The notes under the pieces are model-generated. The model ran no database searches. It had not been told where the DNA came from and worked only from the letters and a program-made list of their open reading frames with translations. The position numbers and the translations under genes are program-made. From sequence record LR756504.1: DNA of 64,000 nt. One strand, 5' to 3'. Of the stretch, positions 28,988-31,079 are shown one piece after another (the stretch's first letter is position 1; the number at the start of each line of letters is the position of its first letter).

Positions 28988-29182
28988 ATGAGTAAAGAAC
29001 AAATTGAAAGTGGAATGGAGTATATAGAATCTCCAGAAGAATTAAATTTAAATTTTGATTTAATTGATTTTGAGGAAATAGAAAGTGTTTCTATTGAAGA
29101 AGTTGAAAATGTAAAAGTATATGATTTAGAAATAAAAAATAATCATACGTATCAAGTTGATGGGCTAGGATTAGTTCATAAC
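28988..29182 (+). mobile_element. Split intein, C-half (65 aa)
   Basis: Own ATG; block F VYDLEIKNNHTY, block G LVHN; followed by GGG. Confidence 0.88.
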
Positions 29183-31079
29183 GGTGGTGGTAAACTGTAA
29201 TTGCTTCCACATAAAAAAATTCTGTGAACTGCTGGAAAATCCTTTAAGTTTCTAATACTACAAAGTAATCTGTGAAGATAAACTTGAATGTTTAAAAAAT
29301 TAGAAAATTGGACAATCAGCATCCAAGCTTCTTAGAAATAAGAAGAAGGTTCAACGACTACTAAAAGTAATCTAAGTTTTAAATAATATGATGAAATTGG
29401 CACGAGTGCAGAACAGTCTAAAAAACTGAAGATATAGTCTGAACTTATAAGAAATTATAAGAAATTAGGATAAAGAACCTAATGATAACAAACTGAAAAG
29501 AAAAGGTAGTTTTGCTGTATATTTAGAACCTTGGCACGGTGACATCATGGATTTTCTCGATTTAAAGAAAAACCATGGTAAAGAAGAAATGCGAGCAAGA
29601 GATTTATTTTATGCTATATGGATGTGTGATCTTTTTTTACAAAGAGTGGAAAAAGATTTAGATTGGTCATTAATGTGTCCTAATCAATCACCAGGTTTGG
29701 ATGATGTATACGCTGAAGAATTTGTTAAATTGTATGAACAATATGAAGCTGATGGTAAATTTTTGAGAAAAGTTAAAGCCAGAGATGTTTGGCACAAGAT
29801 ACTTGAAGCGCAAATGGAAACTGGTACACCATATATTTTATATAAAGATTCGTGTAATGCTAAATCAAATCAAAAAAATGCTGGAATTTTGAAGACATCA
29901 AATCTTTGTGCTGAAATATTAGAAGTAGTATCTGGTGAAGAAGACATAGATCCAGAAACTGGTGTGGCTGGACAAACTGCTGTTTGTAATTTAGCATCTA
30001 TTTGTTTGCCAAAATTTGTAAAAGGTAAAAAGAATTTCAAATTTGATTTCGAAAAATTACATGATGTAGCTTACCAAGCTATTGTAAATTTGAATAAAGT
30101 AATTGATGTTAATTATTACCCAACAGAGAGAGCGAAAAGATCAAATACTAAAATGAGACCTGTTGGTCTCGGCACACAGGGTATGGCGGATGTTTTTTTC
30201 TTAATGAATTTAGAATTTACATCACCAGAATCTAAAAAATTAAATATAGAAATATACGAAACAATATATCACGCAGCATTACAAGCCTCTTGTGATATAG
30301 CTAAAAAAGAAGGTACATACACAATGTTTGAAGGTTCACCAGCTTCTAAAGGTATATTACAATTTGATATGTGGAATGTTGTACCATCAAACAGATATAA
30401 TTGGTATGAATTGAAAGAAGAAATTAAAAAATATGGTTTGAGAAACTCATTAACCACATGTAGTATGCCTACGGCATCAACGGCATCAATTTTCGGAAAC
30501 GAAGCTTCACAAGAAGTTCAAAGTAGCAATATGTATACACGTAAAGTTCTTTCAGGCGAATTCATTATAGTAAATAAACATTTAGTTAAAAAATTGTGCG
30601 AATTGAATTTATGGTCTGATGAAATGAGACAACAAATTATTGTTAATAATGGATCTATTCAAAACATTACTTCAATACCTAAAGAAATTAGAGATATTTA
30701 CAAAACTGTTTGGGAAACTTCTCAAAAAGATGTCATAGATATGTATGCTAATCGAGGCTCTTTTATCGATCAAACACAATCTATGAATATATTTATGGCT
30801 AATCCTAATTATGCCAAATTAACATCAATGCATTTCTATGGATGGGGTGGTGGAGTAACAAAAAGTTCACTGGATGAAAAATACGGAGCAACACCAGAAA
30901 AAGCATTAAAAACTGGTATTTACTATTTAAGAAGTCAGGCTGCTGCTGATGCAATCAAATTTACAATAGATCCCAATATGGTTAAAAGTGTAAAGGTTGA
31001 TGGGAAAGAATATGATGCGAATGAACAAATGAGTTGTTCAATTGATAATCCTGATGATTGCATTGCATGCGGCTCGTAA
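28988..31079 (+). CDS. nrdA: IntC + RNR alpha C-terminal fragment (exons 28988-29191 and 29496-31079)
   Basis: [51 protein letters not shown], C-terminal CSIDNPDDCIACGS. Confidence 0.93.
29192..29495 (+). ncRNA. Group I intron (304 nt, no ORF) in nrdA C-terminal gene
   Basis: P GAACTGCTGGAAA (29226), Q AATCAGCA (29314), R GTTCAACGACTA (29349), S AAGATATAGTC (29429); P1 exon GUGGUGGU pairs with GCUUCCAC ending in U-G; terminal G; removal restores [19 protein letters not shown] in frame. Confidence 0.93.

Follow-up and report, generated by a model that had tools for sequence, protein, structure and literature searches.

A Split Intein with Glycine at the +1 Position and an Adjoining Group I Intron in Loop 2 of a Phage Ribonucleotide Reductase

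Introduction

In an uncultured phage, the gene nrdA, encoding the alpha subunit of a class Ia ribonucleotide reductase (RNR), is fractured, and a split intein of the HINT fold lies within the codons of specificity loop 2, where it is followed by glycine. The locus adds a new split member, with an intron at its flank, to an abundant intein allele without the canonical +1 nucleophile. The DNA under study, referred to as "the window", is a stretch of 64,000 nucleotides that is part of LR756504.1 (100% match), the 636-kb genome of this phage.

Canonical protein splicing requires Cys, Ser or Thr at the +1 position, and in canonical inteins, loss of this nucleophile normally abolishes ligation. The same requirement leaves a scar and limits the use of inteins in protein engineering. 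Given that glycine at +1 recurs in more than a hundred genes of big viruses, the intein described here probably still works, via a route that would be unusual.

Architecture of the Locus

All pieces of nrdA are encoded on the + strand, in the order N-extein with IntN, endonuclease ORF, IntC with three Gly codons, group I intron and the remainder of nrdA. The features of the window that are relevant to the enzyme are the following.

7245..8228, − strand: nrdB, RNR small subunit, intact, partner of the fractured alpha subunit (tblastn, 67% identity over 323 aa)
26785..27669, + strand: nrdA N-extein, 295 aa, ending ...ARAVDQ (Pfam ATP-cone, Ribonuc_red_lgN, Ribonuc_red_lgC)
27670..28002, + strand: IntN, 110 aa (CFLEGT...ILKY), and stop codon (Pfam Hint_2, Hint)
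28056..28979, + strand: free-standing endonuclease-like ORF, 307 aa, between the intein halves (PHROG 681, PHROG 559)
28988..29182, + strand: IntC, 65 aa, net charge −14, block F VYDLEIKNNHTY, block G GLVHN (Pfam Intein_splicing, residues 22-65)
29183..29191, + strand: C-extein exon 1, GGT GGT GGT, i.e., Gly+1, Gly+2 and Gly+3 (sequence; yeast G289-N291 of loop 2)
29192..29495, + strand: group I intron, 304 nt, no ORF (Rfam RF00028, consensus fold, blastn)
29496..31079, + strand: C-extein exon 2, to the stop codon, remaining RNR barrel with the catalytic Cys/Asn/Glu motif (tblastn, Pfam)

The N-extein comprises the ATP-cone, the RNR all-alpha domain and the initial 72 positions of the RNR barrel (Pfam); in tblastn against an uninterrupted homologue, it is aligned over 26797-27669. 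The alignment to that homologue is taken up again at 29496, where exon 2 begins (Pfam Ribonuc_red_lgC, 4e-152). The nearest homologues of the RNR are found in Tenacibaculum and Cellulophaga phages. The first residue of IntN, Cys1, is encoded at 27670 and corresponds to Cys296 of the ORF 26785-28002; block B of this half reads T-E-E-H. The C-terminal half of the HINT domain (65 aa, ending VYDLEIKNNHTYQVDGLGLVHN) is contained in the ORF 28988-29200, which continues with GGGKL and a stop codon.

Between the intein halves, the ORF 28056-28979, for which the ATG at 28068 is the likelier start, matches PHROG 681 ("endonuclease", 1e-35) and PHROG 559 (1e-32). It was checked for a Vsr-like (EDxHD) catalytic core of the PD-(D/E)xK type; its matches are to PHROG endonuclease families only, and there is no significant sequence match in the PDB.

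In the entire LR756504.1 record, the catalytic part of RNR alpha is found by tblastn at one locus only; therefore, the fractured nrdA is the phage's only RNR alpha. Dispensability through a second RNR alpha gene was rejected on this ground. Downstream of nrdA, two neighbouring + strand ORFs of 633 aa and 450 aa are present (window 32956-36256). The start of the 633-aa ORF resembles the ATPase portion of type II topoisomerases, and the topoisomerase may be encoded in pieces, in a T4-like manner.

The Junctions in Loop 2

At the C-terminal junction, 29174-29191 reads GTT CAT AAC GGT GGT GGT, i.e., VHN↓GGG (the arrow marks the junction), with the +1 codon GGT at 29183; the N-terminal junction is ...ARAVDQ↓CFLEGT. 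The initial annotation of this DNA had placed the junctions at Q↓CFLEGT and LVHN↓GGG, and the sequence at 27670 and at 29174-29191 bears this out. It had also stated that no nucleophile follows even after removal of the intron, which agrees with our finding that splicing joins GGG to KRKGS.

Loop 2 of nrdA is uninterrupted, in the copy examined, in the sister huge phage LR756502.1 (642 kb). Removal of the intein restores the host motif exactly, yielding a sequence that is identical to this uninterrupted gene and aligns to yeast Rnr1 286-295. From the uninterrupted homologue, it follows that the intein is inserted exactly between Q and G and that there is no hidden nucleophile. In the numbering of yeast Rnr1 (alignment to PDB 1ZYZ), the insertion lies after Q288 and before G289, and the intron is located between residues 291 and 292. 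The catalytic part of RNR alpha matches two places in LR756502.1 as compared to one in LR756504.1.

Two trivial origins of the missing nucleophile were rejected. Its creation by intron splicing is incompatible with a splice site that is fixed by the P1 helix and by an intron-less allele. As to a sequencing error at +1, the initial annotation had reckoned with a Ser, Cys or Thr codon emerging at 29183 upon resequencing; the codon is GGT, and glycine is encoded at this position also in an identical contig and in five diverged variants.

Loop 2 is in contact with the specificity effector as well as with the substrate. An insert of 150-400 aa in this loop has to be removed to obtain a working RNR. 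In loop 2, a single exchange at Q288 or R293 is enough to unbalance the dNTP pools (PMC2896522), and hence, restoration of the peptide bond is functionally expected.

The description of the intein halves by their charge had to be revised in part. IntC is indeed acidic (net −14), but IntN, which had been described as Lys-rich, is near neutral (+2). The charges had further been regarded as the reverse of those in well-studied split pairs; this does not hold for all such pairs, given that in gp41-1 and gp41-8, IntN is positively and IntC negatively charged (PMC2677866).

The Adjoining Group I Intron

The stretch 29192-29495 between GGG and KRK is a genuine group I intron. When the intron region was scanned (391 nt), Rfam RF00028 gave 60.4 bits (E = 4.8e-15), exceeding the gathering score of 50. 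In a four-sequence consensus fold, the exon sequence GUGG(U/A)GGU pairs with GCUUCCAC to form P1, with the U.G pair directly after the third Gly codon, and compensatory changes are found in 24 of the 74 predicted intron pairs. The 5' splice site lies behind the U of the third Gly codon; the last intron base is G. A covariance score above gathering, the U.G pair at the 5' splice site, the terminal G and the covariation identify the stretch as a group I intron. By blastn, the intron resembles those of Staphylococcus, Listeria and Lactococcus phages. It was missed in an Rfam scan of 6 kb (window 26000-32000), where the RF00028 match was filtered out; a negative result from a large-region Rfam scan is unreliable for AT-rich introns.

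In four of the five intron-bearing relatives, the intron ends with ATG (...AAAATG) in frame with KRKGS, so that the C-extein could perhaps be translated on its own from unspliced transcripts. This ATG is found in L019/L017 (5213-5218) and at the equivalent position in L038, L138 and L142, while the window has CTG at 29493-29495; it makes gene callers see an ORF that starts with MKRKGS.

Split Relatives and Selection

DNA-pattern scans of IMG/VR revealed the same split intein, ARAVDQ↓C...VHN↓GGGK, in five further diverged variants, namely L019 (identical to L017), L038/L100, L138, L142 and L108/L141, resulting in six variants with the window. Across the split variants, IntN is 36-49% identical to that of the window; Cys1, block B T62-x-x-H65, the block F Asp and the terminal Val-His-Asn are invariant in all six. 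Nei-Gojobori dN/dS ratios, which are rough values since dS is mostly saturated, are about 0.1-0.5 for the intein halves as compared to 0.02-0.09 for the adjacent N-extein. By this measure, both intein halves are under purifying selection.

The variants differ in what accompanies the intein. L108/L141 is intron-less, with IntC, the Gly codons and the C-extein in one reading frame; it has a higher GC content, a shorter IntN (96 aa), a different ORF of 334 aa between the halves, and nrdB immediately upstream. In L017, the halves of the loop 2 intein have no endonuclease ORF between them, and an endonuclease ORF of 205 aa is located inside the group I intron.

The nrdA gene of L017 (identical to L019; 2694-7938) is broken at least three times; a second split intein is present at SSNL↓C, with Cys at +1 and a 284-aa ORF between its halves, and a third intein starts at PTAS↓C. 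Three further contigs (L029, L089 and L124) encode ...EMGLVHN↓GGGKLLPSR followed by a stop codon, which looks like another IntC with an intron at the equivalent position.

A word-indexed protein search with IntC returned the query itself as the sole match, and tblastn of GenBank phages found the loop 2 allele in no cultured phage. The IntN profile had no match in a search of genome contigs, a result that has no bearing on its presence in cellular genomes.

A Family of Gly+1 and Ser+1 Inteins at One Site

The Gly+1 intein of loop 2 is not an isolated case: this site of RNR has a large allelic family, to which many contiguous Gly+1 inteins and a sister allele with Ser+1 also belong. A search of 1.84 billion representative proteins with a profile of the six IntN sequences brought up many inteins at this site, some of them contiguous and others split. 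Among the best 150 matches, 10 of the 16 contiguous loop 2 inteins have Gly at +1, in the form …DQ or …NQ↓C…HN↓GG(G)(K/R)R…, and the other 6 have Ser, in the form …NQ↓C…HN↓SG(K/R)R….

In IMG/VR, a DNA pattern for V-H-N-G-G-G-K occurs in at least 120 stretches. It was considered that these matches might mostly be due to chance; this was rejected upon inspection, since almost all are real RNR intein junctions, with nearly all of those listed being genuine intein C-termini followed by GGGKR(N/K). They amount to at least 79 distinct Gly+1 inteins at the loop 2 site in viral contigs, mostly contiguous, with many matches on contigs of giant-virus MAGs. Among the matches listed, the inteins are 152-415 aa long, and the first residue is Cys in every contiguous intein for which the N-terminal junction was located. 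The Ser+1 allele is found in 96 stretches of IMG/VR, 67 of them distinct. It is present, for instance, on a contig of 617,453 bp, which we take to be CroV, as RYVNQ↓CFTPDTPIFT…IVHN↓SGRRKGSF.

The residue at −2 tracks that at +1: V-D-Q is almost always combined with Gly+1, and V/I-N-Q mostly with Ser+1 (L018-L137, L143-L238). This correlation may reflect co-adaptation of the extein or two host RNR lineages.

In a tree of the splicing domains, which has few columns and many unresolved forks, the window belongs to a five-member clade of split inteins with a support of 95. L108 groups with a contiguous mini-intein of 152 aa (L078), apart from this split clade; judged by this placement, it may represent an independent second splitting event. 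The Ser+1 inteins fall among Gly+1 lineages.

Most of the initial IntN matches in viral contigs were C-terminal Hint domains (CFLEGTKIL...; L004-L015), which have no relation to RNR and were discarded. In these giant-virus and other viral contigs, the Hint domain ends the protein, directly after a Pro-rich linker, and looks like a C-terminal autoprocessing domain of the Hog/BIL-like kind.

Class Assignment

A HINT splicing domain is recognized by Pfam (Intein_splicing, Hint, Hint_2) in all six variants when the halves are fused. As in class 1 inteins, Cys1, the TxxH of block B and the C-terminal His-Asn are present, and the insertion is in frame at a conserved host site; in place of Cys, Ser or Thr at +1, however, all six split variants have Gly, as do at least 79 contiguous relatives. 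The intein keeps all catalytic residues of class 1 except the +1 nucleophile. Assignment to class 3 was rejected because the WCT motif is absent, position 4 of block F is Asp (VYDLE), and Cys1 is present.

With Cys1, a C-terminal His-Asn and no +1 nucleophile, the intein has the residues of an A-type bacterial intein-like (BIL) domain. Its location is not that of a BIL domain, given the invariant RNR loop 2, the endonuclease ORF between the halves and the large inserts in contiguous relatives. The arrangement of two co-oriented host ORFs with intein halves and a free-standing endonuclease gene between them is that of split inteins in fractured genes.

When a profile of the six fused inteins was compared to the PDB, the BIL domain of C. 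thermocellum (2LWY) was the best match (E = 1.8e-7), with the gp41-1 intein next (1e-4). An AlphaFold model was obtained for the contiguous relative L022, not for the intein of the window, and predicts a HINT fold (pLDDT 83). Foldseek with this model listed 6Y75, 6TMM and 2LWY first, the nearest structures being the Tetrahymena BUBL BIL2 domain and 2LWY; canonical inteins followed the BIL structures at a small distance (E = 2e-8 versus 2.5e-9). As far as a predicted model and profiles allow, the nearest solved relatives are, therefore, BIL domains, by small margins.

Possible Processing of the Precursor

Our best reading, which we hold tentatively and at close to even chances, is a BIL-type aminolytic ligation, in which the amine of Gly+1, freed by Asn cyclisation, would attack the Cys1 thioester. 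For A-type BIL domains, ligation has been proposed to begin with a thioester, which, once Asn has cyclised, is attacked by the amino group thus set free (PMC4031507); these domains, which lack the +1 nucleophile, mostly cleave, but can splice (PMC4031507, PMC7664689). In the phage, the acidic IntC would pair with IntN, and the barrel halves of RNR would dock. An N-to-S acyl shift at Cys1 would then create a Gln-thioester, and the terminal Asn would cyclise without a branched intermediate, releasing the alpha-amino group of Gly+1. This unhindered amine, positioned by the intein fold and the folded exteins, would attack the thioester, and the native Q-G peptide bond of loop 2 would be re-formed. 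Ligation might be aided by the unhindered glycine, by the flexible Gly-rich loop, and by the fact that both exteins make up one barrel, which could hold the amine in place after release of IntC. Part of the precursor would probably end as hydrolysed, nicked enzyme.

Alternatively, the intein would only cleave: the Cys1 thioester is hydrolysed, Asn cyclises, and RNR alpha consists of two non-covalent chains with a nick in loop 2. We regard this course, the main rival, as rather unlikely. Cleaved products are mostly what BIL domains without a +1 nucleophile yield, and the RNR alpha of Aeh1 functions as two chains. Conservation of Cys1 and His-Asn does not discriminate between the two, as it is predicted equally well by cleavage alone as by ligation. 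On the other hand, the nick would fall between Q288 and G289, where even point substitutions disturb specificity; Aeh1 is split elsewhere and needs special tails, whereas the loop residues on both sides are exactly native in all variants, without added tails. The recourse of the initial annotation to BIL domains and Aeh1 was correct as background (PMC4031507, PMC3045599), but the Aeh1 parallel is limited by its other split site and the lack of HINT halves. Its two proposals, Gly+1 trans-splicing and an assembly device that only cleaves, both stay the leading ones; the contiguous Gly+1 members cannot be mere assembly devices, and therefore, the latter is weakened.

It is improbable that no chemistry takes place at all, with the intein halves serving as a permanent high-affinity clamp on the RNR pieces. 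The strongly acidic IntC could bind electrostatically, and the tails of Aeh1 offer an analogy, but a clamp would not need Cys1, TxxH and the terminal His-Asn, which are invariant at 36-49% identity, and in the contiguous Gly+1 relatives, loop 2 holds an insert of 150-415 aa.

A very improbable scenario is that the intron is not, or only partly, removed, leaving an IntC that carries GGGK(L) and a C-extein that is translated alone from the intron-terminal start codon. The in-frame ATG in most of the intron-bearing relatives would accord with such a three-piece enzyme; the window itself, however, has CTG, the intron scores above the Rfam gathering threshold and shows covariation and a proper P1 helix, and in the intron-less relative, IntC runs straight into the C-extein.

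That the gene is dead or decaying, or that its +1 codon stems from faulty assembly or sequencing, is hardly credible, as nothing speaks for it beyond the missing nucleophile itself, while the reading frames are intact in all pieces, extein dN/dS is 0.02-0.09, the locus is the sole RNR alpha locus of a genome that has kept nrdB, and Gly codons are found at +1 in six variants and more than 100 other loci.

Beyond aminolytic ligation in the single locus, a natural clade of mobile inteins, contiguous and split, may splice efficiently and tracelessly at Gly+1 and thus constitute a fourth mechanistic class, with the pair of the window trans-splicing; we consider this conceivable, with the balance leaning somewhat against it.

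What makes the system attractive is that an essential enzyme harbours a family of Gly+1 inteins that is under purifying selection, and that the Ser+1 sister allele of this site provides a built-in control. If ligation is true, nucleophile-free splicing would be a normal biological solution rather than a side reaction of BIL domains, and both contiguous and split tools for traceless (scarless) ligation at Gly would be at hand. If the inteins only cleave, RNR would function with a nick in its specificity loop in many giant viruses and huge phages, a point of relevance to RNR allostery.

Relation to Known Systems

The loop 2 Gly+1 allele is already catalogued, without comment on its mechanism, in a supplement from 2018 (Green, Novikova, Belfort 2018, PMC5784728 Additional file 3). 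There, RNR intein 1 of Pandoravirus salinus, P. dulcis and P. inopinatum is listed at YVDQ↓GGGKRKGAF, sharing with the window intein the site, Cys1 (…YVDQ↓CFSGDT…) and Gly+1; the RNR intein of Cedratvirus A11 is given as ...YVNQ↓...LAHN↓GGRRKGAA. Both differ from the window intein in that they are contiguous and reside in giant viruses of amoebae. The main text of that paper makes no mention of the missing nucleophile, and our full-text literature searches, the coverage of which was incomplete, found no paper discussing Gly+1 inteins. The intein of CroV RIR1 and its Ser+1 relatives is homologous and has the same insertion point (…NQ↓C…VHN↓SG(K/R)R…), but Ser+1 allows canonical class 1 splicing, and these inteins are contiguous and contain an endonuclease domain.

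In its layout, the locus resembles the fractured genes in which split inteins, such as gp41-1, NrdJ-1 and NrdA-2, occur together with a free-standing homing endonuclease (Dassa et al. 2009, PMC2677866): N-extein with IntN, endonuclease ORF and IntC with C-extein follow each other on one strand in a phage gene of DNA metabolism. An acidic IntC is shared with gp41-1 and gp41-8. The NrdA inteins of that study, in contrast, are inserted before the Cys of the thiyl radical (NL↓C), with a canonical nucleophile at +1, while that of the window lies in loop 2, has Gly+1 and is followed by a group I intron nine bases downstream.

In phage Aeh1, RNR alpha is likewise encoded by two ORFs with a homing endonuclease gene between them, and NrdA functions as two unligated chains (PMC3045599). 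There, however, the split lies after the catalytic Cys/Glu, the short tails are unprocessed and have no homology to HINT domains, and no splicing takes place.

With A-type BIL domains, such as that of C. thermocellum (2LWY), the window intein has in common Cys1, the C-terminal His-Asn and the lack of a +1 nucleophile. BIL domains differ in that they are found in variable regions of non-essential bacterial proteins, have no link to homing endonucleases and mostly cleave, whereas the element of the window occupies a loop that is invariant in an essential enzyme and, genetically, behaves like a mobile intein.
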